Positions 385 to 52,529 of a stretch of 64,000 nt of DNA are shown piece by piece; the stretch's first letter is position 1, and every line of letters begins with the position of its first letter. The notes beneath the pieces are model-generated. The model had not been told where the DNA came from and did no database searches. It saw only the letters and a list, made by a program, of their open reading frames with translations. A program made the position numbers and the translations under genes. This DNA comes from Mytilus edulis (taxonomy: Eukaryota): NCBI RefSeq assembly GCF_963676685.1, contig NC_092349.1, positions 87,420,001 to 87,484,000 on the forward strand. Direction: 5' to 3'.

Positions 385-1626
385 GTATGAGCGGCGGAAT
401 GGGCGGAGGAATGGGAGGAGGAATGGCCGGTGGAATGGGCGGAACAATGGGAGGAATGGGAGGAGGAATGGGAGGAATGGGAATGGGAGGAGCAATGGGA
501 GGAATGGGAATGGGAGGAGCAATGGGAGGAATGGGAATGGGAGGCAAAAGTAAGTCATAGTTCATTCAAGATTTAATAAAGGAATAAATGCCTTTTTTTC
601 AGAGTATAAAGGACTTTTATGATATGTTTATGAGTGACGTGGTTCGGTTAAAAAAACAATAATATCCTTTGTAAAGTCTTATGATCCTTTATTTTGTCTG
701 TATATCTGTGTCACTGAATTGGCATGGCACCTTCATATATTTTTTTGGTTCAAATAAATGTTTTGTGTTTCTTGTTTAATTAAAAAATGAACGCGAAGTG
801 AAAATAAATATGTGAAACGTCGAAACAGTGTGTTTTATTATAGTATTTATCTTGTTTACGTTGTTAAGGAAAATTAGTTCCATCAACGGCGTCTACAAAT
901 TAATGACTTCCAGATCCTCTACAAAATACCCTTTCAATCAATCATATTGACGTATACTTTGATATGCATATCATATCAGAATAATGTTTTTAATAATGAA
1001 CTATTGAATTGCTTATATCAACATTATTTGAACTTTTTTGATGGTTACCTATTTGGCAATCATACAAAGTGTTTTTATAATTTTATATAGAATGTGTAAA
1101 TATTTATAATTCTTGTATCAACATAAAAGTCAATAAATTGATAAACATGTATTTTTTTAAATTGCAGGATATAGAAGATCTACTGGTATGTAGAACAGCA
1201 TTTATATTTATTTAGCAGACTATAATTATTTCTTAAAATGGCATTATTTTGTATCAGATGTATCAGATTCAAGTTTTATTATCCTCAGACACAAGCAGTA
1301 TATAAATGGTCAATATACATACATCAATACATAAATGAACAAATGATCTATACCTGTATACAGTACCTACAATATAATTATGAAAACACATTAGAGGTAT
1401 GACAATAGAAGCTAACACACTTTTAACAACCACGTGGTTATAGTAGTCAAAGATTGTTGAAAAATAAACAAGACAAGTATATTTTAGTCGTAGAGTTGAG
1501 TACTCCCGTAGTAAGCAAAAGTAAACATATACTAAAGTAGAAACAAAGTTGAAATTAATTTCCTTTTTGATGTTTACTCATGTGGACTTTTGTTTTCTTT
1601 CAGATTCTTATTCATATGATTACTGA
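385..1626 (+). CDS. Gly/Met-rich secreted protein A (abductin-like), 3' part only; exons 385-549, 1168-1185, 1604-1626
   Basis: All introns are GT-AG, phase 1. The spliced product reads GMSGGMGGGMGGGMAGG...GMGMGGK-RYRRST-DSYSYDY*. Exon layout matches gene B. AATAAA at 1679-1684. The signal-peptide exon must lie upstream of the window. Confidence 0.85.
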
Positions 1627-2020
1627 TCAACATCATAGACGTCGTATTAGTCCGAAACTAACCATTGTTGTACATTATAATAAATGTTTTTACATGTTTC
1701 TAAATTGTTTTCTTATGACGTTCACCCCTTATATGAATTACTTATTAGTCGATACAACATCTTTATTCATTGGTGGAAACATTGTCATTGGTTATTACTA
1801 ACTGTTCAGCAAATGCATCAAATTTTATCATGACACGGTTGGTGAATAAGGAACTAGTAAAAAATTTGTCGACAATATTCTTGGTTTCTTCATTGTAATA
1901 AGTATTTGATAATTGTTCATGAGGACATTGTCTATATAAATAAAGAATTTAAAAGAGAAAAAAAACCAACAGCATGATTTGATCTATAGCAATAAAGTTA
2001 AAGCAATCTTCACAAGCAGC

Positions 2021-2400
2021 AAAAGAGGGACGAAAATACCAAAGGGACAGTCAATCTCATAAATCTAAAACAAACTGACAACGCCATGGCTAAAAATGAA
2101 AAAGACAAACAAACAACAGCACACATGACACAACATACAAAACTAAAGAATAAACAACACGAACCCCACCAAAATCTAGGGGTGATCTCAGGTGCTACGG
2201 AAGGGTAAGCATATCCTGCTCCACATGTGGCACCCGTCGTGTTGCTTATATGATAACAAATCCGGTAAATAGTCTAATTCGGTAGGTAACATTCATGAAA
2301 GGGAAAGGGATTGTAGCTACAACGTAAGGAACATATCCGATAGCATTTGTGAAACGGTTATTCCATATCGGTCAACCAACTCGTGATGGCGTCCGTAATA
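2021..2400 (-). mobile_element. 3' fragment of a Penelope-like retroelement (family 1)
   Basis: AAAGAGGGACGAAA.ATACCAAAGGGACAGTC... is shared with ~12155-12410, ~36415-36482, ~39165-39380, ~52530-52773 and ~55943-56450. Confidence 0.7.
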
Positions 2401-2741
2401 TTTACTTACAATATCCACTGAATTACTTAATCTTAGTCTGGGACAGTCGTATAAAGAATATCGCTTTGTGTGGGCATGATTGTGACCACACAATTATCCC
2501 TTTCAACAGTGATACGGCAATCATACTTCAATTTAATTGAAATTTAATAATTCAAAATAGATGTTTGGGAAAATGCCATAGAAAAATGGCACAACAACAC
2601 AATAAAAACCAGGCGCTTTTTGGTAAATTCCTGGTCTCTTACTACTTGCCCATTACCATATTGTATAACTATCTCAGAATTGCGTTGATTCAATACAATC
2701 ACACCTTAAATGCAATTGCCAGTACATAATCAAAAGTAGCA

Positions 2742-2902
2742 GAAATACACATATTACGACAAAAACCTAACATGCGTTCATTATACATCACACGAAATAC
2801 ACATATTGCGCCACAAACCTAACATGCGTTCATTATACATCAAACGGAATACACATATTACGCCATAAACCTAACATGCATTCATTATACATCACACGAA
2901 AT
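2742..2902 (+). repeat. 52-bp tandem repeat x3
   Basis: Units start at 2742, 2794 and 2846. Confidence 0.85.
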
Positions 2903-4055
2903 GAAGAAACATACACCATATTTAGATCTAGATGAATTCATGTATCATATTTTACGACACATAAACCGTGACATAAATACTATGCTAGTCATGTTGTCGA
3001 TAACAACAATTTCTATAAATTTAGTGTAAATTCACATTGCGATAAGACGTGTCACGGTACTTGTCTATCCCAAATTCATGTATTTGGTTTTGATGTTATA
3101 TTTGTTTTTATCGTGGGATTTTGTCTGTTGCTTGGTCCGTTTCTGTGTGTGTTGCATTGTAGTGTTGTGTCGTTGTTCTCCCCTTATATTTAATGCGTTT
3201 CCCTCAGTTTTTGTTTGTTACCCCGATTTTGTTTTTTGTCCATGGATTTATGAGTTTGAACATCGGTATACTACTGTTGCCTTTATCTATATAATGCTCC
3301 ATATGTACAATGAGGAAAGTTTGTTTAGGAGCGTCTTTGTCAATATAAATCATTTTATCAAAACGTCTGAGAGAAAACAATAGCCATGGTATTAACATTG
3401 TTTAAAAAAATAACTGCAACGTTGATTAAAAATGGGCAAGTGCTTAAATGAAGGCAACAGTAGTTTACTGCTGTTCGAAATTCATAAATCGATTGAGAAA
3501 CAAATCCAGGTTACAAACTCAAACTGATGGAAACGCATCTAATATAAGAGAACTACGACACAACGGAAACGCGTCACGACACAGAAACGAACTTTAATAT
3601 AACAATGGCCATTTTCCTGAATTGGTACATGACATTTTAAGAAAAAAAATGGTGGGTTGAACCTGTCAATATCAAACTTTATCAATCAACACAACGAATG
3701 AACATGACTAAGGTGCAGATTGTTTTATCAAGTTAGCAAAATTTGATGCAGGAATGCGCATATTTAATATGAATTTCATTTAAAAGAACCAATTTTTAAG
3801 AATATAACTTATAAATATAAATATTTTTGCAACTATAGATTATTTTTGATTGTTTTCGATTTTTTTTTAATCGGCATTTTAAGGGGAGGTGCATTTTCTG
3901 AAGGAATCTACATTGCATTTTCCTATTTTGTATTTTAGCGGGAAAAAACATACCCTATCTTTTCTTTTGATATTCTGATTCTAATCGCAAAATGGTGTTT
4001 TTCTTGCATAATCCATACAAAATGTGTCATTTTATCACACAGTTTAATTGTTAAA

Positions 4056-4355
4056 CGATGATGACTGATGTACCCATATTTTGACTATTATATTTATTGT
4101 GTCTGTTTATTTAACGCATCAATGTAAAAATATCGGAAATTGATGAGACTGTCATTACAAAAGTGAGAGGGTTAGCGCTATAGAACCAGGTTTAATCCAC
4201 CATTTTCTACATTTGAAAATGCCTGTACCAAGTCAGGAATATGACAGTTCTTGTCCATTCGTTTTTGATGCGTTTTGTTATTTGACTTTGCCATGTGATT
4301 ATGGACTTTCCCAATTGATCTTCCTCTAAGTTCAGTATTTTTGTGATTTTACTTT
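4056..4355. mobile_element. Family 5 repeat
   Basis: GCCTGTACCAAGTCAGGAATATGACAGTT core. Copies at ~9180-9483, 48357-48620 and 53690-53915. Confidence 0.7.
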
Positions 4356-7300
4356 TCACAACCTGTAGCTTGAGAAAATGCGCGGTGACCTATCATTTTT
4401 ATTATATTTTTGAACATATATCAATAGATACTACGTTTTGGCAATCTATGAACAAATTTTATCATTTTTATTTTAGACTCCCATACCACCTTAAAACTTG
4501 ATTATTATCTCATTAACCATGTATGAAGGGTATGATTCAGTGAAATTGACAAAATTGAATGTGAAACTCAAACAGACATCGTGGATATAATAGTAAAAGT
4601 CACAAGTAAACATTCATCACAAATGACTAAAAATTTCAAACAAACATACAGATGTATATTTGTTGTTGAGATCATATCGACAAAGACGTCAATAACAATG
4701 GTTTTGTATTTGACAGTCCTTACCATATCATCCCACACCTTCCCTATGCAGTTCACACTCCGTACAATATTAAAACAATGATAAACAAAAACTTAAGCAC
4801 AAAGGTAACGAATGGAAACAACGTTAAAACAAAACCCTTTTGTATCCGAATCACTCATCAGTACTTACCTGCATCTATAATTGGTCGGGTTTTACCCATT
4901 GATGAAAGCTGTCAAAATAAAAACAACACGTTATAAAATACATTCGTCTACAGCAAATTTCGGGATTTATCGTCATTAGGAAAACGCAAAAACGAATATT
5001 TGACCGCCAAAGATTTACAAGAACTGTCATATTGACGAGTATCTTGAGTTTGTTTTAACTTTGTAATACTTGTGGAAGAAAATAACGTCTCCCTAGTTGA
5101 GATGCTTTATGGTCGTTAGATAAATAGATACGTAACAATAACGTTACGTTAATTATTACATACAAAAGTGTGCGCGGAAGTACGATAAACAATTACATAA
5201 CATAGCGTTCTAAAGTCGGTTGGCCTATATTCACGACTACTAGCTTTATACAAAAAAGACATACAAAATAAAAAAAAAAAAAACATCTATGGTCAAATTA
5301 GCCCGAGGGAATTGAAACCTAAGTTTTTTTTATAATTTTGACATTAAAAAACGGACAATTGTAGAAAGCTTTTTTCATAAATCATGTCATCGCCGAATAA
5401 CTGTCTATTAGTTTATGAGACATAAAGTCATTAGTAGTATATTGCAAATTAGTAGGCATAAATTGATTGGGAGAAAACAAATTCGGGTTACAAATTAAAA
5501 TAGAGAGAGACAAATCAATTTAACGACGCAAACACCATAACAATAGAAATACTGAAGTGGAACTAAAACAAACGCAATCGCATATAGAAGTGGGTAGTCC
5601 ACCTGGAGAGGTATCGACCCTTTCCTCAAGTAAAGTAAAAAGCATTTCATACTCCGAATGTGACATATAAATGTAGTTGCAAATGATGTCATTCGGACTT
5701 TAGTGGATAGCTGTTTCTGTGGCATTCATTCAACCATCCTTATTCTATATCATCAGCTATCAACAAAATACAAACAAAATACAAAAAATTTCAATTGCAT
5801 ACAGTTAACGTCAAAACGCATGTAGTTAAAAGAGACAAAACTATATATTGTAACGAAAACATAATCTTCACTTTTTGTCAATAAGGAAACACAATAGCAA
5901 TATCGAACATGATGTATGAATTCCGTGCATCCAATGATGTATAAATTCCTGACATTCAAAGGAGTATATAAAGGCAACAGTACTATGCCGTTGTTCGAAA
6001 GTCATAAATCGCCGCAGAGAAAACAAATCCTGGTTACAAACTAAAGGTCACATTTTAAAGAATATAATCTTGATGTAGATGTAACGATAATGATCCAGTA
6101 ACGTTGTATTAGACGTGTTATATACTAGACTCTGATCAGGTTGACAAAAGAATAGCCAACGTAGGTACAAGTATTGTGTCTTAGAGAGACGAATTCCTAC
6201 TATGTAAAAAATAACTCTGATTATAATAACATTTGTTTTGAAACTGACATTTCAATATGCTTGATTTCGGGATTGACAACATATTGGTTAAGTTTGGAGG
6301 ACGCATTTTTCAACAAACAATCGGCATTAAGTAAAAGAAGTTAGTAGTATCCTCAGACTTTACTTTTTGCTATATAGATTATGTTCTCTTAACAATTGAA
6401 AAGTTGGTGACTTTGTTGAACAAATCGATCTCATCGAACTTGAGAAAGAGGATACAAATAAGTCCGCCTCATATCTTACAACTAGAAATTGACAATGATG
6501 TCAGTTGAAAGCAAACCTTTAGAACCGAAAAGATAATTTCAGATTCCCAATTATGTTTTTTTTTTATGAATCATAATTCCAGGACATGCATACGGAGTAT
6601 GTATATCCCAGTTGGTGCGACATTCCTGGGAAAATGTATTCGACCCGTACATATGAATATAATCCCCATTCTATAATCACAAACAATTTAAAAGAAATTG
6701 ATCAACATGTTTAATGTTACACATAGACGTTCTAAGTTATATGGGAAATATTATATCTAGCTGAAAAGTTAGCTTAAAGGCTATTTAAAATTTCCTGATG
6801 TTTTGTCAGAGGGGGACACATATTCGCCGTTTTTAAACAACTATTTAAAACCCAATAACGTTGCTTTAAACAATATTTATCAAATCAATTTCATTTTAGA
6901 TGAATACCAGAAATTTAAAAGGTGAAGTGAAAAGAAGGGCAATCAGTCAAAGAAATACTAAGAAATACGTTTTTACACCACACAATCATACAACGGCGAA
7001 ATTGTGTCCCTGGCGAATATATGAACAGATAAATAGTATGCATAAGTTCATTTGCAAATAGTAATAGAGCTCGTTAAAAATCACAAATTTTATTTTATTT
7101 TCAAGTATATAAGTATATTTCACGAAATGTATCTATAAAGGGACGATCACATTTATTTTTTATTTTGTACAGACTACACACATTGTGCACAGTTAAAAAG
7201 CCCTAGGTCAACACTGTCAGATAAGTAAATTACACAAATTAAAGTGGGTAACTGATCCCGCTAAGATATTTGTCATCCGGCCCACCGCTAATATTATTTT

Positions 7301-7909
7301 AATTATATGATAAGACGGGGTTGCATTGTGTGTTAATATTTCAAAAGATCTAACCTTGATTATGTTGAAATGTCCTTCACTAATAATATTGAAAACGCAA
7401 GATAAAAAAAACACCAATGATATAAAGCTTGTTTTCAAGGTTGACAGGTTATTTGTTTTTATCTCCCCAAAATAATTTATATTGGCTTCGTTACACATAT
7501 TATGAGTTAATCGAATTTTAAATATTCACAACAGCATTGTCTATTATAATATTTAAAAAAAAAGTCTGTTATATGAACAAATATACACTAAAATTTAAAT
7601 TTTAATTGATGTATATTAGATCAAATCTTCAAATCACTTTTATGTTTTGATACGATTCTAACATTCAAAGTCAAATTTGTCAACCTCAGCGTCAAGTATA
7701 TACTATTTCGTAACACGTCTATTACAATCAAAGACCAACATAACATCAATCATACCGTGTAAAAAGAACTAGTTTGACATGTTAAAACATACAATAAAAT
7801 TAACAGGTACAAGTTATACATGATGACATAAAAATATTACTTATGTTTTAGCATGTTTATATTTTACAAGTTGTTAAAGTTGAATTCACTATTTCCTGTG
7901 CTAATTCCT

Positions 7910-7977
7910 TATAAAAGATGTTAAGTTTCTGAGTATGGTCACAATTTAACTTGTCCTCCCTACTGCTACAGGTATGT
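7910..7977 (+). promoter_or_regulatory. Putative TATA box and short non-coding exon 1 of gene B
   Basis: TATAAAA at 7910-7916 and donor CAG|GTATGT at 7971/7972. An acceptor TTTCAG ends at 9942, just before the ATG. Gene C has the same arrangement. Confidence 0.6.
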
Positions 7978-8356
7978 TGTTTGTACTTGCATTTAAGATC
8001 TAGATTTCAACAGTTAACTTTGGTGTATCATCCATTAGGTGACAATGTCCTTACTGTTTGGCTATAAATATTTGTCATTTTGGTCATATGACTGGTTGTT
8101 TACGGAATTTTAACATTCAATACATCCTAAGCTATCAAATATTTGGCCTTAAACGTTCATGATGAAAATAAACAAAAAACGAGTGCAATCATAAAAGTTA
8201 AAAGGGATAGACGTAAAAATCATTGTAACATATATTTTTTGTCTATCAATTCATTCGGTACATACCTTATGTGAATAAATAAATTGTGGAACCATATACG
8301 ATCAAAATGTAAATGATCAAATGATTGAACTCTTTTTGTTAACCAAATATATTAGA

Positions 8357-8757
8357 TTGTCGAAATGCGCATCAGGTGCAAGAAAATTGGTACCGTTTAT
8401 TTTTATTACTACCACTGGGTCGATGCCTCTGCTGGTGGACTATAAGTCCCCGAGGGTATCACCAGCCCAGTAGCCAGTACTTCGGTACTGGCATGAAAAT
8501 ACGGATTGTTTGTGTTATTAAAATTTGCTGTTACAAAATGATAGAAATTATTATAAATTAAGGAATGTATCTCCCTCGTGCAAAGCTCTGATTCCTTTCA
8601 CGGATTTGGCTATACTTTTTAGACTTTTTGGATTATAGCTCTTCATCTTTTATATAAGCTTTGGATTTCAAATATTTTGGCTACGAGCATCACTGAAGAG
8701 ACATGAATTGTCGAAATGCGCATCTGTTGCAAGAAAATTGGTACCGTTAATTTTATT
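8357..8757 (+). mobile_element. Non-LTR retrozyme-like unit (351-nt monomer) with terminal direct repeat
   Basis: TTGTCGAAATGCGCATC..TGCAAGAAAATTGGTACCGTT is repeated at 8357 and 8708. Predicted cleavage sites are after 8373 and after 8724. Confidence 0.7.
8685..8730 (+). ncRNA. Type I hammerhead ribozyme (minimal, Penelope/retrozyme type)
   Basis: Stem I GCATCA/TGTTGC (one mismatch), core CTGAAGA at 8693-8699, stem II GACA..TGTC, GAAA, short stem III AT-GCGC-AT and cleavage triplet ATC. Confidence 0.75.
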
Positions 8758-9951
8758 AACAATAAGCATGAATTAATACTTATTTGTCTCGTGAATGTGT
8801 GTTTATTTATATCGTGAATGTAAGTTGATTAAATTGCCCTTTAGACATTTGTTAAGCAGATATTAATTTTTGTTTAAACATTCTACAAGTTTTTTAAATG
8901 TATTATGTAAAATGTTGAGAAAAAAATGCAAAATAGTTATCAAAGGTACCAGAATTATAATTTAGTACGCCAGACGCGCGTTTCGTCTACGCGCGTTTCA
9001 TTAGTGACGCTCATATCAAAATTTTTACAGTTACTAAAATCTTATCTGAAACATATACCTGTTTTCAATTCCCTTGAAGCTAACATATTTACAGTGATAC
9101 TATATAATATACAATAACAAATAAAGTAAACAGACTTTTTTTTCGTATAAATGTTGCCTCAATTACTTAATAACTTTATGTTGACTGATGTACCTCTATT
9201 TATGATATTTTTATCTATTGTATCTGTTTGTTTTGTTAACGCATCATTGTCAAATTGTGGAATTAGATGTGACTGTCATACAAACGAGAGGTTAAGCTAG
9301 CTATAAAACGAGTTTTAATCCACATTTATTCTACATAAGAAAATACCTGTACCAAGTCAGAAATATGACACATTTTATCCATTCGTTTGATAAATTTGTA
9401 ATTGGGCTTTTGATTTTGCATTTTTGATTATGGTCATTTCTTTATATATTTCCTTGGAGTTTAGTATTTTTGTAATTTTACTTCAAACAACGTTACAGTT
9501 CACTTTTTCAGTCTTAAACTCCTCAAGATGAAATTAATTTCCTTATTAGAAATTCTTCTCATCATTAGTGCAATCTGAATATCATCCAATAAATTGAAAA
9601 AAAACCAAATTAATACGTGTCATCTGTAGTTATTTTTGGGTGAAATAATGGGTATTTAAAGTTTGTATCATACTGAGGTAAAGTTCATTTCTAAAATTGA
9701 TTTAGCAGTTAATAAACAGTGTTAATTTTACGCAAAAAACAAAAGTAACATCAAATGTACACTAACTTCAATAATTTTAGATTGTTTTGTCTTACTGAAA
9801 CAATAAAAAAGCTTGCTCAAAAACATAAAAGCCAAAACTAAAAGCACGTAACGGGTTAAAATAAATCATTTTCAATATCAGCAAACAATAAACAAAATAT
9901 AATTGAATTGCAAATAATGTTTTTTTAATTGTTTTATTTCAGTCTTTCATC

Positions 9952-12055
9952 ATGAATCCCATTCAGACCGTTGTCACATTTATTGTTGTCTTCGCCACAG
10001 TTAATGGTGCTGGTTATGGTAAAGGTGGCGGTATGGGAGGTGGTATGATGGGAGGCGGCATGGGAAGTGGTATGATGGGAGGAGAAATGGGTGGCGGTAT
10101 GGGCGGTATGATGGGTGGTGGTATGGGAGGTGGTATGATGAGTGGTGGCATGGGAGGCGGTATGGGTAAGATGATGGGCGGTGGTATGGGAGGAGGAATG
10201 GGCGGTGGTATGATGGGCGGTATGATGGGTGGTATGGGAGGTGGTATGGGTATGGGTAAGATGATGATGCCGATGCCAATGGAAATGCCAATGCCAATGC
10301 CAATGCCAATGCCGATGCCAATGCCAATGCCAATGCCAATGCCAATGGAAATGGCTATGCCTATGCCAATGCCAAAGATGGGAGGTGCAATGATGGCTGC
10401 TATGATGGGAGGTAATTAAAACGCATTTTATGTCTGACTTTCATGGATTATTATTACCTCTAATACAAAGATGTTATTTAATATAAGTGAACACATAATT
10501 AGCAATTATTACAAATGTGTCAAGGACTTGCTGGATTCTCCATTTCAATTTGTTCAAGCTAACTACATTTACGTTCTATTCTGTATAATTAATATATACT
10601 TATTTCCAGTTGATACAATATTCGAGAGCTTGTATTTCTTATCATGCTTTCCTTGATATAAATGTTTTCAAAAGAGAAAACTAAATGCCTGATTTAGGAC
10701 AAGACAATTAACAAAAATAAATGTACATGGCATATAGCAACCAAAAACAGGAATTGAGTAAAAGGCACCTGACATTGGAAAAACACATAAAAAATGGACT
10801 TGGGTTTAATTGTTTTGCAAAAATACATGTGTATATTCAAAATAATATTCAAAGTACAATGCATATCTCAAAATAGTCAAACATATTAAAATAGTTTTAA
10901 AAAACCCATATATATTGAATAAATAATACATGTTCTTATGCTAAGATTTAGTGTATTATTTCAATATATGTTTTGTATTCTTATAGGTATGGGCGGAGGA
11001 ATGGGTGGAGCTATGGGAGGTGGTATGGGAGGAATGGGCGGTGGTATGGGCGGAGGCATAGGAGGTGGCAAAAGTAAGTCATAGTCCATTGAAGATTCAA
11101 TTTGTTATAATGTACTATACGGTTATCGAATGTTCTATTTGTATCTGAACAATTGAATAGAAATGTCATATTAAGATTTCGTGACACTTGCTTTTTCTTT
11201 TGTGAATTATTTAAAGAATGATACTTCATTATTTGTTCTCATTTCATATGATTGTTTTTAATACTTTTCATATTAAGTTAAACATGTAGTACACATTAAA
11301 ATAAAGGCAACAGTAGTATACCGCTGTTCGAAAATGGACTGAGAGAAAACAAATCCAGATTACAAACTAAAAACCGAGGAAAACAATTGAAACAACGAAA
11401 CAAATCACTAAATCTCATGTGGTTACTTACACACACATTCATATTTCTAAGTATATTGGTATATTGATATATATTATTTTGCAGGATATAAAAGAGCCAC
11501 AGGTATTTATAACTCACATTTAATATAGTTATTATCTCTATTTGGAAACACCTATCGGAATTACGAGTCCTCAATGCTTTTCAACTTCGTACTTTATTTG
11601 ATTATCCGGGTGCGGGAATTTCTCGCTACATTGAAGACCTGTTGGTGACCCTCTGCTATTGTTTTTTATTTGGTCGGGTTGTTGTCTCTTTGACACATTC
11701 CCCATTTCCATTCTCAATTTTATTACTGCATGACAGTCATTGCTACAAATGTACCTGTCATCTCAATAAGTATCATGTATTGATTGATTGATGAAAGCCT
11801 AACAAAAGGTCATGTCACAACAAGAGCTAAATAAGAACACAAAATTTAGTTAATTTGTTATATTGCAGTCAATAGATAAAATCAATGTGAAGTTTTATTT
11901 CCTTCAAATTAGAAAAAAAGAAAGAAGAAAATAACAATAAATGATACACACTGCAATAGTTAATGTCAACATTTATATTTATATTTCCATTTCCATCTGA
12001 CGTTTACTTAATTTGGCTTTCTTTTCTTTCAGATTCTTATTCATACGACTATTGA
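9952..12055 (+). CDS. Gly/Met-rich secreted protein B (abductin-like, with Met-Pro block), 195 aa; coding exons 9952-10411, 10987-11073, 11485-11502, 12033-12055
   Basis: Hydrophobic signal MNPIQTVVTFIVVFATVNG, then AGYGKG, (GGM/GGGMM)n, (MP)n and C-terminus GGGK-RYKRAT-DSYSYDY*. Canonical phase-1 splice sites; 588 nt in frame; AATAAA at 12108-12113. Confidence 0.9.
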
Positions 12056-12154
12056 AAACCGTTATATGAGCAGTATTTGTCATAAACATTCCATCTTTGT
12101 CCTGTATAATAAATGTTTAAATCTGACTTGATTTGTTTTCTTATGATGATAGTT

Positions 12155-12410
12155 AAAAGAGAGACGAAAGATACCAAAGGGACAGTCAAACTCATAAATC
12201 TAAAACAAACTGACAACGCCATGGCTAAAAATGAAAACGACAAACAAATAACAGCACACATGACACAACATAGAAAACTAAAGAATAAACAACACGAAAC
12301 TCATATATCTAAAACAAACTGACAACGCCATGGCTAAAACTGAAAACGACAAACAAATAACAACACACTTGACACAACATAGAAAACTAAAGAATAAACA
12401 ACAAGGAAAC
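12155..12410 (-). mobile_element. Family 1 retroelement 3' fragment with internal tandem duplication (~110 bp)
   Basis: AAACTCATA.ATCTAAAACAAACTGACAACGCCATGG occurs twice. Confidence 0.7.
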
Positions 12411-14416
12411 TCATACTTAGATGTTTTATGTGTGTAAACATGGTCATGTACCGTCATCCATTACTTGACTGGACATGTATCGTGCATTAGCATGCCAATG
12501 TCTGTTCTTGATTTAGGAGTAATTCCAATTTTTGTCTTCAAGATTCTAGTTTTTTTCTAACCACTGTCCCAGGTTAGGGGAGGGTTGGGATCCCACTAAC
12601 ATGTTTAACCCCGCCACATAATGTATGTATATGTCTGTCATTTAGTGGTCATCGTTTGCTTATGTGTTACATATTTGTTTTTCGTTCATTTTTTATACAT
12701 AAATAAGGCAGTTAGTTTTCGCGTTTGAATTGTTTTACATTGTCATTTCGGGGCCTTTTATAGCTGACTATGCGGTATGGGCTTTGCTCATTGTTGAAGG
12801 CCGTACGATGACCTATAGTTGTTAATTTCTGTGTCATTTTGGTCTCTTGTGGAGAGTTGTGTCATTGACAATCATACCACATCTTCTTTTATGTATATAT
12901 AATAATAAGTTATTATCGTAATAAATAAACAATTTAAACAGAAAACCAACATCCTAATCTGAAATACAACAATATCCATAAATTGAGTAAGTCAGACGTC
13001 AACTAATGATCATAGAACTGGATCATAGTTTGGCAAAGGAGAATAAATCATATGATTTTGAATTTTCAACTCTCCTTTACAAGAATGAAACGGCTGTAAT
13101 GTTTTTGAACAACTTCATGTCTACAAATAAAAAAGATGTTTGGGTAAACGCCAGTAACAAAATGACATACAAACAACACAAAAAAAAAACCTGGTAAGGT
13201 TTTTTTGGTAAATCTACCGTAAAAAAAAAGGTGAGAACATTTCAAACTGAAAATACATTCATATTCCTCAAGTTAAAATGGTCAGGTGAAACACAAGAAT
13301 ATTGAATACACACAGACATTGCTCCTTTATAACAACAGATCCATTTCTGTCTAGCAACTTTCCAGCAGCTCTTATATAGAGAGGATATATTTCATATTCC
13401 TATCCGTGTGGGTTGCTGATCTCAAGGAAACTATTCACCTTAGATTTGAAAAGGTAAAATCTTCCCACCGAACATTTTACCGCCGCAATCAAGAGTTGGA
13501 TGACGACGGATTTTATCCAAACATCACAACCCCAAGACTGTCCTTCTTTTCGTCGAATGCGATTAACTGAATAAGTCTTATCAACGGGTTTGTACTTTCA
13601 CACACGAGCAGTACAAGAGGTGCCACAACTGGAGTAGGAGCTGGTATCCTTCCGGATCCCGTTCTACATTTTTTTTCATGTTGTGTTTTTTTTAATTGTT
13701 ATTCTTGATTCTTTTCGACTTATAAGTTTAAAAGAGGGCTGTCCCTTTGTTATCGTTGGTTATGACAACTTTATATCAAACTGAAATTAATTCCCTGATT
13801 CCTTAAAAGAATGTGTAACACATCTATTTACAGACATCAATTACAAAGTACTCCACAGCATGATAAACTAGAATACAGCGGCATTTTAGAGGACCGTAAC
13901 ATGCCTAATACTAAAGAAATTAAACAAAAAATAGAAAAGGCTAAGAGACGAGTGACTATTTAAATTTGTAATAACTACAATACTACCAGTAGTTTTACAA
14001 ATAAGACAACACCGTAAAAACTTCCTTTACCAACTAAACCGTCCTAAAACACTACGTATAGTACGTATCTTCTACGAATGTTAATTGCCTAATTTTCATA
14101 ATACAAAATGCCTAGATACTTAGATACCTAAGCAACAGACTGAAGAACAAGTCCCTTTATAACTGACTATGCGGTATGGGCTTTGCTCTTTGTTGAAGAC
14201 CGTACGGTGACCTATAGTTGTTAATGTCTGTGTCATTTGGTGTCTTGTGGAGAGTTGTCTCTTTGGCAATTATACCACATCTTCTTAATAAATAAAACCG
14301 TCCAGTCATAAAGGAACCACAAAGGACCAATCAAGTAAAACATACTGATGATGTTTTCACCACAAAACAATATATACATATAGATTGAAATACAAATTGA
14401 TTGTAAAAATATATTA

Positions 14417-14657
14417 CTGTGGATTTATTATTTTTGGTTTGAAACCAACTTTTGTGGATTTAGTGGATGCAGATGAACCTCGAAATTAAATATTAAACGA
14501 ATTTACTAAAGGCAAATATGCTGACTCCGGCAAAATCACGAAAACAAAAGATCCACGAACATTGGTGCCCACGAAAACAAAAGATCCACGAACATTGGTG
14601 CCCACGAAAATAAAGATCCACGAACATTGGTGCCCACGAAAATAAATGAATCCACAA
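14417..14657. mobile_element. TA-flanked MITE with an internal 33-bp tandem repeat (14537-14643)
   Basis: CTGTGGATTTATTATTTT / AAAATAAATGAATCCACAA termini and about 3 copies of CACGAAAACAAAAGATCCACGAACATTGGTGCC. Confidence 0.6.
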
Positions 14658-16962
14658 TAAATAATACAATGTATAAACAGCATACATGTTACTAAACTTA
14701 ACTGAAAAAAAGGAAAAGGGGTGACAAACTACTGACAGAGTTTCGGATGATTATGATGATAATGAAAACGAGATCCGTTTTGCCTGTATTGATATTATAC
14801 TTCGATGAATATTTGTATGTCTAATAAAACTTATATACTTGTTTGAAAACTTGCATATTTTTTTAATCATAAAGAGTTTTCGTTCAAATAACAAATAGTC
14901 CAAATTACAGCCTTCTGGGTGTTCATATATCGTGCACAGTTGTTTCAATTTTTTATTTCTGTTTAGTGAAAAGTAAAATATCAAAAATACCGAGCTACGA
15001 TGAAAATTCTAAACTGAAAGTCTCCCGTATCGTGCCAACAACTAGTGTTAGAAAAAATGTGTTTTTTTCTTTTCAAAAACCCTATTAGTGAATCAATATT
15101 AGTAACAAAATCTGCCATCCTAAATGATCTCACTGCAGTACCCTAACTGTATTGCTGCGTAATAGGTAATTTGTAAAGGTTATGCTAGCTTTTGAGGTAA
15201 ATGTCGACATGTTTGTGCTTTGAAATGAAAAATATTCTCTTCTATCATAAATTGGTGTATTAAGCTTCCTGTTCAAGATATAAAAATAAAGATCCAAGAA
15301 TATGCAGTGTTCACTGTAAGTATAAGATTAATTAATGTCAGGTTATTTTTTGATATATGTTCCCTGTATTAAAAGTAATCTTTTGAATGCATTCCATTTC
15401 TGAATAACGTATTTTAACCGTTACGCGATTAAAAAAGAGACTACGAAAAGCTTGATATTTCTATTCAAAATCAAAATAAATGAACTGAATTTAAGTATCT
15501 GATTTATTTTACGGACTTAGACAATAAAAAAACCCGTATCATTTAGTAAGCTATTAAAGGATACAGCAAACAATATACACAGATGACTCACTTTGGTTGA
15601 AAAACCTTAGAGGTTGCACTTTGTCAATACAACTGTTTCTCAAACCACTACTTTCTTGTGGCGATATATAATATTCACAGACATGTTAATTTGTTAACGT
15701 ACTGGTTCCAATAAATGATCTCTGTGTGTCATCTCAAAGAGACATCAATTGGAAATGTAATCAGTACAAAAACATGGTAGTGCATACATTTAAATTCTCA
15801 TGAGGTCAAAAAATGAAGGCAAGGGTAGTATAGAACTTTAGTATAAGTTTAAACTCGTAGAAGTTCAGGGCATGTACATGTTTAAAATATGCCACACAGC
15901 TCTATACTTTGACCTTTGAATAAAATAGTAATGCATATAAACTTTCCGTTCTGGGATATTAATTTTCACAAAACTTTATAATAAAAGTTTCACAGTTTTA
16001 GCCGAAAGGGAGTGGGAAATTGCATTGTGTATATCAACAGAATTGCAACCTACAAAGCGAATAACTACTTATAAAACATTAGGTTTATCCCTGAGTTACA
16101 ACTTTAGTGTAGAGGCTTTAATGCATAACTTTGTGTCGTATATCATATGCATAGAGTTGTGCGGTACACATGTTGTGATTTATAACCATTCCATATATAT
16201 ATTATATACGATAATAAAAAAACATAGCAGCTAATTTTAAATTCAACAGATGACACGAAAAAGGTGAACTTCTCATAGATACAGAATTGCTACTTTTGTA
16301 TTCCGTGGATAATATAATAGAAATATAGTTTTATAACTAATTGTAAGATATCATATTAAAACCTCTTGTGGAATTATTGCAAAATAAAGTTGAATCACAA
16401 TTTCTGCAATGTTTACCCATTGGTAAAAAGTTATCAAAGGTACCAGGATCATAATTCAATACGTCAAACGCGCGTCTCGTCTACATATGATTCAAAGTCA
16501 AAGAGCATTTAGGATCCAAAATTCCGAAACGTTGTGCCAAATACGGCTAAGGTAATCAATCATTTCAGCTGTTTGATAAGTCTTAAATAACGTTAAAAAA
16601 TAATGATAATTTCACCTATGTCAACGCCCTTTACCTCGTTCCTTGTTTATATGTTTTATTGAGTCTATATCTCTATCTTGTGTAGCGCTTAAGGATAACT
16701 CAAAGCACAATAGGGAGAAAATTAATTATTTAAATATTTCCGCGAAAATTGTCCTCAAATATTTAATACTTTTTAAGAAAGTAGCAAAACAACAACTGTT
16801 TTAGTTAGTGTCTATGTTTGTTAGCAATAGCCACATGAGTCAGTATACCTTGAAGTTTCTAAAACAATAGAATAACTCAATCTATACAATGCTACTACAA
16901 AATGTACAACATGTTGGTTTAAAAAAAAACATAATATGACTCAATCTATTCTATGGCTTTTC

Positions 16963-17480
16963 AAATTGAGAAAGGAAATGGGGAATGTGTCAAAGCGGCA
17001 ACAACCCGACCATAGAGCAGACAAAAGCCAAAGGTCAACAATTGGTCTTCAATGTAGCGAGAATTCCCGCACCTTCAGCTGGCCCCTAAAAATATGTATA
17101 CTAGTACAGTGATAATTGACGTCATACTAAACTCCGAATTATACACAAGAAACTAAAATTAAAAAGCATACAAGACTAACAAAGGCCAGAGGCTCCTGAC
17201 TTGAGACAGGCGCAAAATTGCAGCGGGGTTAAACATGTTTATAAGATCTCAACCCTCCCCTATACCTCTAGCCAATGTAGACAATTAAACGCATAACCAT
17301 ACGCACATAAAAATTCAGTTCAAGAGAAGTCCGAGTCCGATGTCAAAAGATGTAACAAAAGAAAATTAATAAAATGACAATAATACATAAATTACAACAG
17401 ACTACTAGCAGTTAACTGACATGCCAGCTCCAGACCTTAATTAAACTGAGAAGATTATGTCTTCATCATACATGTATGAA
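16963..17480. mobile_element. Dispersed repeat (family 4, AAATTGAGAA.GGAAATGGGGAATGTG end)
   Basis: Inverted copies lie at ~21477-21855 and ~11605-11722. Confidence 0.7.
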
Positions 17481-18678
17481 TAGAATATTTTGTTTGTTTT
17501 GTGTTTGTTTATAAAATGAATTCATTTACTATCTAATGACAATTTGTTGAACCAGAGGGACTAACAAATAAACTCATCATAGATACCGAGATTGGAATTG
17601 TTTATTTGCGCCATCCGCGCGTTTCGCCTACAAAATTACAGACTGATACAGTCTCCTGGTCCAAGATTATATATTCCGTAATGCATTTTGTTTTGATTTG
17701 AAGAAATTTTTTCTAAATGCTTATTGTATTAAGATAGTATAGAAATAGCAGTCTGTAATGTGTTCATCAAAAGACACATTTTGTTTGATTGTGTAAATGA
17801 TGACTTGTTTCACTTAGAAATATATAATAGCAATATAATAATCTTCAATCCATAACGATACAATATTGATATTATTTACATAATGGAGATGTGCAAGTGT
17901 ATATCTACTACAATTTGTTTTAATTGTCTGCTTGTTTGGTTAACATCTTTACTTCAAATCACCAGGATACTTAAAAAAGCAGCCCAGGACAGCTGACAGA
18001 GGGTTCCCTGCTTTTACTTTACATATACCAATTGCAACGGAAGAATACAAATGAATAAAAAATTACACACTTTCATATATATTCAATACATAAACCAGCA
18101 TCTGTTTTCAGTTAGTTAATGTATTCTACACACCTTGAAATCTTGCACCTTTATATTAAATTTTTAGTTTTAAATACAATAACAATAAAATAGTCTGTCT
18201 CTGAGTTATGATTGTGATTACATATACAACACAGCATAGGTTGCTAAGAGAGCTGACAAAATACAAATGGCAAAATATATAATTAGCCTTTGAAATGCCC
18301 TTCCACCCAAACCACACTCGTTTTTAAAACGAACTAAAATGACTGTTGTGGAAAACAAGAATTACATTCGAATGAGTATTATCTTTACTATGAAATACCT
18401 GGTGGAATGAACGGGTACAATTTATATAAAAACCTCTCAACAGAATATAAAAAACCCAAAAATAGTTAAAAGAAACAATGACAGACAAACGAACAATTCT
18501 TCGTATAGTTATTACATGTATAAACAAAAACGACTTTTAAATTTCTGACACATTTAATGGGATAAAACACCGTTTCCTTGTTTCGATTGGTCATTCCCAT
18601 TTACAAGGAACATCTTGTTATCTTCCTGTAGAAAACGACAGGATAACGATTATTGTGATTATTACAAAAATATCTTAC

Positions 18679-18762
18679 ACAATCTTAACGACTACTTCAT
18701 GTAATACTACAGTTATAAAGACAACCTTAACGACTAGTTCATGTAATACTACAGTTATAAAG
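18679..18762 (+). repeat. 42-bp tandem duplication upstream of the gene C TATA box
   Basis: ACAA(T/C)CTTAACGACTA(C/G)TTCATGTAATACTACAGTTATAAAG x2. Confidence 0.85.
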
Positions 18763-18924
18763 TCACATATAAGTTTAACCTTCAATCTTTAAGTTATAAA
18801 GTTGAATGAAAGTTTTACATATAACATGTAAGACATGACATAGAAAGTAATCAAAGACATTTTAACATTGTTAATCGTGTAACTTTTCTTTATTTTAAAT
18901 GTCTGTGTTTCCGAGTTATTTTAC

Positions 18925-19008
18925 TATATAAATGCCAAACTGACCATCGATCTTTACTCCACTATTTGCCGTCATTTCCCATCGGATCCACATCTAACAT
19001 AGGTATGT
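18925..19008 (+). promoter_or_regulatory. Putative TATA box and non-coding exon 1 of gene C
   Basis: TATATAAA at 18925-18932, donor TAG|GTATGT at 19002/19003, acceptor TTTCAG ending 19879 with the ATG at 19881. Confidence 0.6.
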
Positions 19009-19880
19009 AAAATAGATTCATAAAAAAATTGCAGAATAAAATGAGTATTAAATCTTTTTACTGTAGATTAGTGATCGATTTGTAGTTTTTCTATGTTCAC
19101 GAAATCAAAATCTCTTTTTTTTTAAACTAATACTAGTATAACTTGATAGTTTTTATAATCAGATTAAACAGATCCGGAGTATATTATTGTTTTAATGATA
19201 CATGATGGCTATTAATTTTCATTTCATTTAATTCTCCAATTTACCCAAAGGTTACACCTTCGTTATGCTTCGTTAAGCTAAAATGACATCATCCAATTTA
19301 AGCCGATTTAGTTTTGCTACTCATGATTTTTGTTTTTAGCAGAATTTTGGTCTTTATAACGTATGTGATCAGAGTTTTTTTTTCAAAAACATGCATATGT
19401 TGGCCACCAAATTCGGTATCATACCTCAGAAAGATTATATGTTGTGTAAAAACATCGATAAATCTAAAGGTCAACATTGCCTTCCACATATTTTTTTTTA
19501 ACTTTTTGTTTTTTATATAGAAGAACATACAAATATACAAAATTACGTTTACACGTGTAAAAAATCTCATGTACGCGTAAGTAAACCCCTTGTACTAATA
19601 AGAACAAATTTTTAAACTAATTGTGAACGTGTTTACAGAACATAACGTTTGGAAGGAAAATGGCCTAAGTATAGTGTCAGTTATATTTGAATAAACAAAG
19701 ACCTTTTCACTATTATTGATCGGTGTCCAAATAAAACAAAATATATAATATGTATGTAAGTTTCACTAACTGAATTTGGTCTGCGGGTATTTTCAACCTG
19801 AATAACAAGGAAAGAAATACAATGGTAAATATTAATGTTTAATGAATATAGCTTAATATATGCAGTCATTTCTTTTCAGA

Positions 19881-22292
19881 ATGAATCCTCTACAAACCGT
19901 TATTGCAGTCTTTGCCGTATGCTTTGTGGCAGTAAATGCCGCCGGATATGGTAGAGGAATGGGCGGAGGAATGGGCGGAGGAATGGGCGGCGGCATGGGT
20001 GGTATGATGGGAGGAGGAATGATGGGTGGTATGCCTGGGGGTATGATGGGAGGAATGCATCCTATGATGGGTGGCATGCCCGGTGGCATGATGGGTGGTA
20101 TGCCCGGTGGTATGATGGGTGGCATGCCAGGTGGGATGATGGGTGGCATGATGGGTGGAATGGGCAGCGGTATGATGGGTGGTAAGTTTTTTTAGTCTAA
20201 TTAAGTCAACTAGATTTAAAAAACTATACAAAAACAAAAACAAAAGGTTAACCTTGAAATCTGAAGATGGAAAATATCAAGAAAATAAATTTGTTGGTAC
20301 AAGCTTAAGTTTGTGAGAGGTATCAGTTGCCAAATAAGTGTGCACTCGTTGTTGAAACCGGACTGCATCTAGTAAATACAACTATTTTCGATGAAAAAAT
20401 GTTGATGCATGTATGACTACATTACTTTCTCTCTTAATTCAATTATGGTGTTTTTCAACATATGAGCATATTGTATATAGAAATCATTTTAAAAGGTATT
20501 TTAATTGTCTTAGGCAACAATTCAAAGCAAATAAAGTAACAAACATTATACAACGAGTTCTGTTGAAATTTGTTAATTTTAAAATTGTTTGGTCTCCAGT
20601 GGCACTGTTGAGCCTGGTGGTTTGTTAAAACATCTTAACCAGTTGTAAATATAATAATGCTTCATATATGGAACACCGTATCAACCCTTCACCAAAATCG
20701 GGCTCTATCAGAGTTTTAGCATCATACTGGTGTTCTGGGATGACACATATGTGATATTTAAAAAGTCGTATAATATTCTCTATTTATCAACATTGCAGGT
20801 ATGGGAGGTATGATGGGAGGAAAAAGACGTAAGTAAAAATTAGACTAATTTTATCATTTAAATAATTTCTTCATATAATATATCTGCATATTCTGCTTTA
20901 AAGAGGACATGAATAGATTTGCATGTCCGTCACACATGTGCTTCTTGATAACAATTATTAAAGTTAAGTTACATAAATGTTTTTGTTTTAATTATACCTC
21001 CGAAACCTTAATATCAAGTAATGGACTTGAAAGTAAAAGTCATTTTTTACTTTGATGGTTTTGACATATATTGTTTAGGAATAATCATCTTGTTTTTTTT
21101 GTTCGATCTTTAACATTCAAAGTAATAATTAGAGTATCACATCACATATTTTTTTCTTTGCAAGTTTGGACATAATAGATAAAGGCAAAAGTAGTATACT
21201 GCTGTTCAAAAGTCATAAATCGATTGAGAAAAAATAAATGATGTCTTAGATCATAGAATACAAATTTTTGATTACGATGATTTTGAAGTAAATTGTTCAA
21301 TAGTAAATTTTACGATTGAATGGTGCCGTATAGTTTTTATTTGATACTCATAGTATGCCACTTATAGTCACAAGTTCATTTGATCTCTTTTCTAATATTA
21401 CAGGTTATAGAAGAAATGCAGGTAAATTGTATTATAGTTTAAGCTAGTGTAGTAAAATAAACATGAAGGACATACTTCTCTTGAACTGAATTTTGATGTG
21501 CGTATTGTTATGCGTTTACTTTTCTGCACTGGCTAGAGGTATAGGGGGAGGGTTGAGATCTCACAAAAATGTTTAACCCCGCCGCATTTTTGCGCCTGCC
21601 TAAGTCAGGAGCCTCTGGCCTTTGTTAGTCTTGTATTATTTTAACTTTTAGTTTTGTGTGTACAATTTGGAGTTTAGTATAGCGTTCATTATCACTGAAC
21701 TAGTATATATTTGTTTAGGGGCCAGCTGAAGGACGCTTCTGGGTGCGGGAATTTCTCGTTGCATTGAAGACCTGTTGGTGACCTTCTTCTGTTGTCTGCT
21801 CTATGGTCGGGTTGTTGTCTCTTTGGCACATTCCCCATTTCCATTCTCAATTTTATACATATTTTTCCAATAAATACTGGCAAACTTTTATGTAAACCAA
21901 TCTTCTGGATTTCTCGCTCCACCGTGATAAGTTATATTCTCTCCTGAATATCAAGTAGTACACATGCAACAAATTAAATGTGGAGCCTTCATTTTAAAGC
22001 ATGTATTGTTACATAACAAGTCATGGCTAAGACACATCAAATTGTGTAGTGTGTGTTGTGGATTTTATATAAATACTGTCAGTTGTTTCTATGCATTATA
22101 CGGTTATATCATCAAATTACTTATTATACAAAATAGCATGAACTATATTCTATAAATTGTCTGCCACTTCAAATCAACTTTAAATTTATTAATCATGTGA
22201 CAATACCCTTGACTATCAAAAGAATTACAATTTTGTATGTACATTTGGTATACTCTTTAATTGCAGATTACAGCCAAGGATACGACTACTAG
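19881..22292 (+). CDS. Gly/Met-rich secreted protein C (abductin-like), 124 aa; coding exons 19881-20181, 20799-20828, 21404-21421, 22267-22292
   Basis: Signal MNPLQTVIAVFAVCFVAVNA, then AGYGRG, (GGMMGGMP)n repeats and C-terminus GGKR-RYRRNA-DYSQGYDY*. Phase-1 GT-AG introns; 375 nt in frame; AATAAA at 22316-22321. Confidence 0.9.
21477..21855. mobile_element. Family 4 repeat in an intron of gene C
   Basis: Reverse complement of ~16963-17325. Absent in the paralogous intron at ~51090. Confidence 0.75.
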
Positions 22293-51937: not shown

Positions 51938-52529
51938 TTCCTGGATATGTCATCAATTTCAATAAACATTCAGAAAACTAACAGGTCTTCTTTTAATTCT
52001 TTGATAAAATATAATGCAGTTCCAAGTTTACATATTGTAATGATGCCTTAGTGTGAGAAGCAGACAGGAGGAAGTGACAAATACTATGTTGAACTAACAA
52101 AAGTCCCTTCCTGCCTGTCACTCGTTTAGACTGTTTTCGCATTAATTTTACAATATTTTTTGAAAGAAAAATAAACCCAAATAATTAAAAACCAAGCATT
52201 ACTATTTGAATAATATCGTATAGTCATGTCAAAGCTTGGAAACTGTGTCAGTGATTGCAATAAGTTCCATATTAGTGTTTTTTTTGTATTCTAGAAATTT
52301 AGTATCGCTAAACTCATCATAAAGCAGGCCACGATAACATGTCTGAACCATTTCCTTGGATGCGATTCAGAGACCAGTAATTCAACTTTAAAAAAAGTCA
52401 ATGTATGTATACTGAGGAAAACCTTTACTGAATGCATGATGACATAGAAAGAAAAATACCTGTATAACCTATGCATAATTGCAAAGAAGCATTACAAAAA
52501 TACCAAATTCCGATGAAAATTCAAACCGG

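Follow-up and report, generated by a model that had tools for sequence, protein, structure and literature searches.

Two described ligament components offer the closest comparisons for the genes considered here. Abductin is the rubber protein of the scallop hinge ligament (Cao, Wang & Bayley 1997, reviewed in PMC9999432 and PMC13052691). Its cross-links are unknown, and have been speculated to involve tyrosines at the extremities of the chain and Lys-Met sulfilimine bonds (PMC9999432, PMC13052691). The second component is LICP, the ligament intracrystalline peptide of Pinctada fucata, of sequence pQPDHEGTYDY. Its functional residues on aragonite are D3, E5, D9, Y8 and Y10; the planar binding conformation and the elongated form of the aragonite depend on Y8, Y10, D3 and D9 among them (PMC13080008).

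A third group comprises extracellular matrix precursors with C-terminal propeptides that are processed by furin or other proprotein convertases. These start with a signal peptide, carry R-X-[K/R]-R where the chain is flexible, and end in a short piece that would be lost during secretion. When such a site is exposed in a flexible secreted chain, with basic residues at P5/P6, it is usually a convertase substrate. LICP itself probably lies at the C-terminus of a precursor. The mussel genes described below share the layout of these matrix precursors, but their site is carried on an 18-nt exon of its own and the predicted piece is only 9-10 residues long.

Abductin-like genes in tandem

The window, that is the whole stretch of 64,000 nucleotides of Mytilus edulis DNA that was analysed, holds four members of a tandem family of five genes (Z, A, B, C and the truncated D), an array spanning 68 kb. 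Gene Z, the fifth copy, is located 13.8 kb upstream, outside the window. All the features mapped in the window lie on the + strand.

Gene A enters the window with its penultimate Gly/Met-rich coding exon (385-549, ending GGC AAA A|gtaagt, phase 1); its earlier exons are upstream of the window, in L002. In gene B, a putative core promoter, with TATAAAAG at 7910-7917, and a 5'-UTR exon occupy 7910-7971, a GT donor following position 7971. In the first coding exon (9943-10411), the ATG is at 9952, 9 nt past the acceptor; the frame then runs through a signal-peptide-like N-terminus, GYGK, Gly/Met repeats and a Met-Pro block to an end in phase 1. The second Gly/Met exon (10987-11073) ends GGC AAA A|gtaagt. 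The promoter and 5'-UTR block of gene B is 75-81% conserved in genes Z and A, and the three genes have in common TATAAAAG, the 5'-UTR exon and its GT donor. Because these elements are conserved, Z, A and B look like active genes. In gene C, a signal-peptide-like N-terminus is combined with GYGR and MPGGMMGG repeats in the first coding exon (19880-20181, ATG at 19881, ending in phase 1), and a 30-nt exon (20799-20828) encoding (G)MGGMMGGKR ends AGA C|gtaagt. Copy D is a 5'-truncated duplicate whose homology to C begins at 50183. Its 30-nt Gly/Met exon (50301-50330) differs from that of C by two changes, both synonymous, and neither an ATG nor a Gly/Met first exon was found in the sequence upstream of it.

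A six-frame scan revealed MGGG/MMGG repeat exons in Z, A, B and C. Judged by inspection, the N-termini of Z, B and C are signal-peptide-like: MNP(I/L)Q, a hydrophobic stretch and VN(G/A), with a small residue at −1, precede AGYG(K/R), while gene A has FPYGGG. The likeness to abductin therein lies in the N-terminal signal sequence with a Tyr just past it, in the long Gly/Met-rich low-complexity domain with scattered Lys and few charged residues, and in the restriction of Tyr to the ends. However, the mussel repeats are devoid of Phe and the abductin consensus GGFGGMGGGX is absent; the mussel genes contain Met-Pro blocks (PMPMPM), whereas abductin has about 1% Pro; and they carry a C-terminal module that is extra relative to abductin. 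The family appears to encode secreted, abductin-like Met/Gly-rich elastomer precursors.

An 18-nt exon and a tyrosine-rich tail

The original prediction was that every copy contains an 18-nt phase-1 micro-exon encoding a furin-type site, followed by a short acidic tail. All four micro-exons of the window were recovered at the predicted positions, each exactly 18 nt long: 1168-1185 in gene A, (A)GA TAT AGA AGA TCT ACT G or RYRRST, with acceptor ttgcag and donor gtatgt; 11485-11502 in gene B (RYKRAT); 21404-21421 in gene C, (C)GT TAT AGA AGA AAT GCA G or RYRRNA; and 51022-51039 in copy D (RHRRNA), where the TAT of C is CAT, the only difference between the two. Each is preceded by a pyrimidine-rich tract that closes with CAG, and is followed by GTA. 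Since the upstream Gly/Met exon ends on the first base of a codon (GGC AAA A|gt or AAA AGA C|gt), the micro-exon is phase 1-1.

The terminal coding segment is found at 1604-1626 in gene A, (G)AT...TAC TGA or DSYSYDY-stop, with AATAAA at 1679-1684, 52 nt past the stop; at 12033-12055 in gene B, again DSYSYDY-stop, with AATAAA at 12108-12113, also 52 nt past the stop; and at 22267-22292 in gene C, DYSQGYDY-stop, with AATAAA at 22316-22321, 23 nt past the stop. That of copy D (51912-51937, AATAAA at 51961-51966) is identical to that of C. In gene Z, the micro-exon (RYRRAT) maps at L001:5602-5619 and the tail (DSYSYDY*) at L001:6207-6229. Translation across the junctions gives GGK-RYRRST-DSYSYDY* for A, GGK-RYKRAT-DSYSYDY* for B, GGKR-RYRRNA-DYSQGYDY* for C and GGKR-RHRRNA-DYSQGYDY* for D. 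The five copies are alike in their AG/GT borders, 18-nt length, 1-1 phase, open frame to the stop, and an AATAAA located 52 or 23 nt beyond it.

The convertase consensus was present throughout, as RYRR in Z, A and C, RYKR in B and RHRR in D, with extra Lys/Arg at P5/P6 (K-R-Y-R-R or K-R-R-Y-R-R), and no second R-X-[K/R]-R occurs anywhere in these proteins. The proposed two-part architecture, a Gly/Met body and a tail after the motif, likewise holds in the sequence. Arg, Tyr and Asp are nearly restricted to the module and near-absent from the Gly/Met/Pro body (Arg count 0 in Z and 0 in the coding exons of gene B), and Tyr outside the module is found only in the N-terminal GYG.

It had also been noted that skipping of the micro-exon would keep the frame, and this is so in all five copies, yielding GGK-N-SYSYDY* or GGKR-H-YSQGYDY*. 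The 18-nt, phase 1-1 exon could therefore be a regulated cassette, mostly skipped or tissue-limited, with splicing toggling between a cleavable precursor and a fixed Tyr-rich tail. We consider this improbable. As every intron in these genes is of phase 1, in-frame skipping is a consequence of the general gene architecture and not a special feature of this exon. Moreover, the exon is constrained at the protein level (module pN/pS about 0.05-0.1), which shows that its translation is frequent enough for selection to act on it.

Extent and constraint of the module

In a pattern search of the whole 1.37-Gb genome, the module (18-nt exon plus tail) was confined to the 68-kb tandem array. A 26-nt degenerate micro-exon pattern had 5 matches, 4 of them in the window, against 0 for the reversed control, so its occurrence in the array is far beyond chance. 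The tail pattern had 31 genome matches versus 41 for its control, and the only clustered ones were the five copies, at C6:87.406-87.472 Mb.

The small exons might nevertheless be unused, their similarity being a relic of duplication while the real transcripts end elsewhere. The libraries searched contained no transcript or protein record of them: in the protein libraries, no spliced or annotated family member was present, the matches being genomic read-through ORFs and unrelated low-complexity proteins. Copy D, without its first exon, would also suit a relic. Divergence among the copies points the other way and makes this explanation highly unlikely. Between paralogues, introns 2 and 3 are similar only at the level of shuffled sequence, the C-D pair excepted, whereas in the exons length, reading frame, splice sites and amino acids are all maintained, as is the AATAAA at a fixed distance; among these paralogues of one genome, identity is 56-94% for the micro-exon and 87-100% for the tail. 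Synonymous sites of the module are near saturation in Z, A and B while amino acids are kept (pS 0.38-0.64 versus pN 0.03-0.06), with 6 synonymous changes over 8 sites in the trio against 2 non-synonymous changes over 31 sites (Fisher p = 2e-4). Even in copy D, exons differ from those of C at 3 of 73 nt, a lower rate than the 15-23% seen where the introns align (binomial p 4e-4 to 3e-3). Small exons kept between introns at the shuffle level, with pS far above pN, indicate that the 18-nt and terminal exons very probably code for protein and that purifying selection acts on them.

Constraint is uneven along the motif. The P4 Arg is common to all copies although its codon is AGA (split A|GA) in Z, A and B and CGT (split C|GT) in C and D. 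P1 Arg is invariant, P2 is R or K, and P3, P1' and P2' vary, as would be expected if a convertase recognised the site.

Possible cleavage or retention, and the predicted peptide

The genome has 38 matches over cut-off to the convertase P-domain PF01483 (P_proprotein), and the setting of the motif, judged from its sequence, is a Gly-rich, presumably disordered chain behind a signal-like N-terminus. We tentatively propose, with a little less than half of our confidence, that the micro-exon and terminal exon form a C-terminal processing module of an elastomer precursor, from which cleavage would free a YDY peptide. The micro-exon would place a canonical convertase site at the end of the flexible Gly/Met chain, and the last exon would contribute an acidic peptide of 9-10 residues, rich in Tyr and with Y-D-Y at its end. 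In the likeliest course of events, the precursor would enter the secretory pathway, a furin-type convertase would cut after R-X-[K/R]-R, and carboxypeptidase trimming would then leave an elastomer ending in ...GGKRY. The trimmed chain would have a Tyr beside Lys/Arg at both ends (xGYGK/R... and ...GGKRY), suited to terminal cross-linking. The freed A/S-TDSYSYDY or NADYSQGYDY could act as an LICP-like binder of aragonite faces, or as a propeptide delaying assembly. Along this path, we infer inclusion in mRNA, secretion, cleavage, trimming, peptide function and expression in the ligament.

Cleavage could also be of the neuroendocrine type, with PC1/3- or PC2-like enzymes cutting at K-R or R-R, and G-K-R leading to an amidated Gly-rich chain plus small fragments. 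G-G-K-R does precede the motif in all copies, and convertase genes are numerous in the genome. We regard this as very improbable all the same, as the body, a long structural chain of low complexity, does not resemble peptide-hormone precursors, and the conserved four-residue spacing of R-X-[K/R]-R is better explained by furin-type recognition than by simple dibasic sites.

A weightier alternative, somewhat unlikely in our estimation, is that the module is translated and, instead of being cut off, serves the mature protein as a cross-linking or adhesive terminus. Its tyrosines (possibly as DOPA or methylene-bis-tyrosine) beside Lys/Arg would link chains end to end or anchor them to mineral, and pairing between molecules may occur through the adjacent KRYRR (basic) and DSYSYDY (acidic) blocks. 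Such a Tyr/Lys/Arg module accounts for most of the same data. Tyr is found only at the protein extremities (N-terminal GYGK/R and C-terminal module), which is where abductin cross-links have been speculated to form, together with Lys-Met sulfilimine bonds (PMC9999432, PMC13052691); purifying selection across the whole tail suits a retained functional end, and the invariance of the tail fits equally well. On the other hand, the exposed site with its basic P5/P6 would usually be cut. Further, copy D has His in place of the single Tyr of the basic block, while the three Arg/Lys positions stay basic in every copy. That Asp and Ser are conserved along with Tyr suggests more than a cross-link donor.

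Returning to release of the peptide, the original prediction compared it with the pearl-oyster ligament peptide, and the likeness is real: length, acidity, D3 and Y-D-Y agree, though pyroGlu and Glu5 do not. After a cut behind RR, the predicted product of C and D is the 10-mer NADYSQGYDY, with D3, Y8, D9 and Y10 in register with LICP, a comparison chosen after the fact and made against the only known ligament peptide; that of Z, A and B is the 9-mer A/S-TDSYSYDY, with D3 and the terminal Y-D-Y. Both are, like LICP, short (9-10 residues versus 10), acidic and Tyr-rich, with Asp3 and an identical C-terminal Y-D-Y bearing a free carboxylate. However, the N-terminal Gln/pyroGlu of LICP is replaced by a predicted Asn, Ala or Ser; Glu5, part of the D3-E5-D9 carboxylate array, is replaced by Ser (C and D) or Tyr (Z, A and B); and the mussel peptides carry extra Tyr/Ser. 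No closer LICP-like coding string was found in the genome at up to 3 mismatches. LMP, the Pinctada framework protein with MMMKPD repeats, lacks the LICP sequence and does not resemble the mussel genes.

A broader possibility, which we judge unlikely, is that one precursor, cut by a convertase, yields both a Gly/Met rubber with Tyr/Lys ends for cross-linking and, in a fixed 1:1 ratio, an LICP-type peptide that would bind aragonite faces and shape the nanofibres, that LICP-type peptides are generally C-terminal propeptides of ligament elastomers, and that the 18-nt cassette could switch this coupling on or off. If this were true, a single precursor would supply both halves of the ligament composite.

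Organisation of the array and of its 3′ module

The window spans positions 87,420,001-87,484,000 on contig C6 of the 1.37-Gb assembly, in which genome-search matches were spread over 14 large contigs, and is AT-rich (G+C approximately 31%). Elastomer gene copies A to D are oriented head-to-tail, and in a six-frame scan of the window the coding exons gave Met/Gly-rich translations of low complexity. A fifth copy, gene Z, is found 13.8 kb upstream of the window and has four coding exons, as in the family; its micro-exon (RYRRAT) is at L001:5602-5619 and its tail (DSYSYDY, then stop) at L001:6207-6229, L001 and L002 being separately numbered stretches upstream of the window. The two large upstream exons of gene A are situated in L002.

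The original observation, that the genes end with an 18-nt micro-exon and a last exon coding for a Y-D-Y terminus, was correct in every detail, and the same structure was read at each named place. The Gly/Met exon ends after the first base of a codon (GGC AAA A/gtaagt in A and B, AAA AGA C/gtaagt in C and D, the slash marking the splice site). In all four in-window copies the micro-exon is 18 nt long, preceded by a pyrimidine-rich tract ending with CAG and followed by GTA, and the last exon starts with AT and carries seven or eight codons before the stop. Translation across the junctions, each ending at a stop, gives GGK - RYRRST - DSYSYDY for A, GGK - RYKRAT - DSYSYDY for B, GGKR - RYRRNA - DYSQGYDY for C and GGKR - RHRRNA - DYSQGYDY for D. 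As had also been proposed, the micro-exon can be skipped in frame (phase 1-1): the translated junction is then GGK-N-SYSYDY or GGKR-H-YSQGYDY, with the stop kept. Regulated skipping is one way to read the module, which we rank below the retention of the module on the mature protein, discussed further on.

By genome-wide pattern search, the module was found in this array only. A degenerate micro-exon pattern including the splice sites gave five matches genome-wide, four of them in the window, and none with the reversed control. For the last-exon pattern, 31 matches were obtained in the whole genome versus 41 for the control, and the only clustered ones were five, all within C6 87,406,204-87,471,937. 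Matches to gene C exon 1 on contigs C2 and C8 were rejected as family members, being GGATGGAT-type microsatellites and not genes.

Copy D does not qualify as a complete gene, its first exon being missing. Its homology to C begins only at 50183, and neither an ATG nor a Gly/Met first exon was found upstream of this point, so that D is a 5′-truncated duplicate. The region compared was 50183-51994 versus 20594-22351.

Other elements were noted in the window. Between gene C and copy D lies an LTR retroelement (30084-35766), whose two 300-nt direct repeats are 100% identical, indicating a recent insertion. Its open reading frames encode, in order, a SCAN-like gag domain, an integrase (H2C2 + rve) and RT/RNase H, which places the integrase upstream of RT. 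The minus strand at 23474-24019 holds an open frame of 181 aa with a match to the 3-beta-hydroxysteroid dehydrogenase/isomerase family (PF01073, E=1.4e-9, profile positions 171-261). It probably represents a single exon of some gene, or else a fragment. The 5′ intron of gene B contains a direct repeat of 53 nt, with copies at 8356-8408 and 8707-8758 that are 92% identical. For a hammerhead retrozyme in this intron (8357-8757), Rfam gave no match window-wide at gathering scores, and none in 8000-9200 at E<=1.

Conservation of the small exons

Among the paralogues of this one genome, and for all pairs except C-D, introns 2 and 3 aligned at the level of shuffled sequences (for instance 0.34 versus 0.34, and 0.52 versus 0.51), with intron lengths of 241-872 nt, whereas the micro-exon kept a constant 18 nt with 56-83% identity and the tail was 87-96% identical. 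In the multiple alignment, this forms a sharp island of identity whose edges are the splice sites.

Codon analysis of the micro-exon plus tail, for pairs within Z, A and B, gave pS values of 0.38-0.64 and pN values of 0.03-0.06. In this trio, 6 of approximately 8 synonymous sites were variable, versus 2 of approximately 31 non-synonymous ones (Fisher p=2e-4). The first Arg codon is AGA, split A/GA by the intron, in Z, A and B, and CGT, split C/GT, in C and D; the use of different codons indicates that the residue is conserved, and not the DNA. The distance from the stop to the next AATAAA is 52 nt in both A and B; in C and D it is 23 nt. Between D and C, the three exons differ at 3 of 73 nt, versus 15-23% in the aligned introns (binomial p 4e-4 to 3e-3). 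The explanation is either gene conversion or continued use of the D exons, possibly together with a different upstream exon.

Upstream, a block of 240-345 nt is common to Z, A and B, with 75-81% identity, 1.5-2.9 kb before the ATG (L001:1240-1570 for Z, L002:6110-6530 for A, window 7617-7971 for B). It includes an invariant TATAAAAG, a short presumptive 5′-UTR exon and a GT donor, and a splice acceptor is located 9 nt before each of the three ATGs. No counterpart of the block was found for gene C; the two subfamilies may thus be driven by different promoters.

Taken together, the intron/exon contrast, the codon analysis, the Arg codons, the AATAAA signals, the promoter block and copy D make it very probable that the small exons are translated in the frame of the junction translations. 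That they are simply unused is contradicted by the selection data, and we place this possibility too below retention of the module.

A predicted convertase site

Within the micro-exon, the Arg residues at P4 and P1 are invariant and P2 is Arg or Lys; substitutions occur at P3 (Tyr/His), P1′ (Ala/Ser/Asn) and P2′ (Thr/Ala). As read from the sequence, this pattern is the one expected at an R-X-[K/R]-R convertase site and not what a Tyr cross-link site would show. P5/P6 are also Lys/Arg. The Gly/Met/Pro body is almost devoid of Arg, Tyr and Asp, with no Arg at all in the coding exons of Z and B, and no second R-X-[K/R]-R was found in the translations of the family proteins. The only Tyr of each first exon is in a GYG right after the signal-like peptide.

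In secretory proteins, exposed R-X-[K/R]-R motifs are cutting sites for furin-type enzymes, and carboxypeptidases then remove the basic residues. From this known action we infer two products: a cut at the micro-exon site would free a peptide of 9-10 residues, and after trimming the elastomer would end with ...GGKRY (or ...GGKRRY). Neuroendocrine-type dibasic processing followed by amidation would be another use of the basic residues, which we rate lower than retention. A profile search for the convertase P-domain (PF01483) gave 38 matches in the genome. Among them are several tight clusters on C3 (e.g. 90769-560406, 15.27-15.81 Mb and 33.6-34.0 Mb), C2 (67.46-67.78 Mb) and C10, pointing to tandem expansion of a convertase-like family.

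Chief among the alternatives is retention: the module would stay attached to the mature protein and serve as a cross-linking or adhesive terminus made up of Tyr, Lys and Arg. This agrees with Tyr being placed at both termini and with selection acting on the tail as a whole; we consider it possible, though less likely than cleavage. Of the two-part precursor originally proposed, the architecture, a convertase site followed by a peptide resembling a known ligament peptide, is real and under selection; the cleavage and the function stand as hypotheses. The cleaved precursor is the reading we favour, at somewhat less than even odds.

Resemblance to ligament proteins

The Pinctada fucata ligament intracrystalline peptide, LICP, is pQPDHEGTYDY, and mutagenesis has shown that D3, E5, D9, Y8 and Y10 matter for planar aragonite binding and for elongated crystals (PMC13080008). 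The suggested analogy with this short acidic peptide is borne out as a sequence resemblance. The 10-mer predicted after RR in C and D has D3, Y8, D9 and Y10 in register, and the 9-mer predicted for Z, A and B has D3 and the terminal Y-D-Y, but the pyroGlu and Glu5 of LICP are missing from the mussel peptides. A back-translated LICP string, searched with up to 3 mismatches, had no match in this genome, which therefore holds no closer LICP-like coding string. No description of the LICP precursor or of its genetic origin was found in the accessible literature; the Pinctada framework protein LMP consists of MMMKPD repeats and does not contain the LICP sequence.

Abductin, the rubber protein of the scallop hinge ligament, is secreted, Gly/Met-rich and carries Tyr at its extremities; its cross-links are not known, Tyr-derived links and Lys-Met sulfilimine bonds being the candidates (PMC9999432; PMC13052691). 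The mussel proteins share this general layout, but lack the Phe-containing decapeptide of abductin and have additional Met-Pro blocks. The mussel genes combine an abductin-like elastomer and an LICP-like peptide, both resembling known kinds.

Relatives were sought in protein libraries with exons queried singly and junctions translated as short stretches only. Gene B exon 1 had three matches, each of them either a genomic read-through ORF or an unrelated Gly/Met protein; gene A exon 1 and the signal-peptide region alone had none. HMMER over 1.84 billion representatives returned 22 weak low-complexity matches, none with the YDY end. The tail pattern had no match in a scan of genome contigs for orthologues, and nothing relevant was found for the tail and repeat motif strings in the open literature. 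Three of the proteins matched (P0001, P0002 and P0004) are read-through ORFs on ENA/JGI metagenome contigs of approximately 3 kb, in which MPGGMMGG repeats follow a signal peptide that resembles the one of gene C at about 60%. These ORFs probably represent a first exon of the orthologous gene in another mussel whose DNA was in the metagenome samples. A metagenome scan with P0001 gave one locus, which was unrelated.

Bivalve hinge ligaments are protein-aragonite composites. To our knowledge, how their elastic matrix and mineral nanofibres are produced in register is not understood. A conserved convertase site that separates an elastomer from an LICP-like peptide predicts specific peptide masses in the ligament mineral, a matrix protein ending with ...GGKRY, and splice junctions. 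Should these predictions fail, the module would still mark the place where a mussel rubber protein is probably cross-linked at its end. If they hold, a single gene product would couple matrix secretion to the control of crystal habit, and the result would provide sequence rules for biomimetic elastomer-mineral materials.
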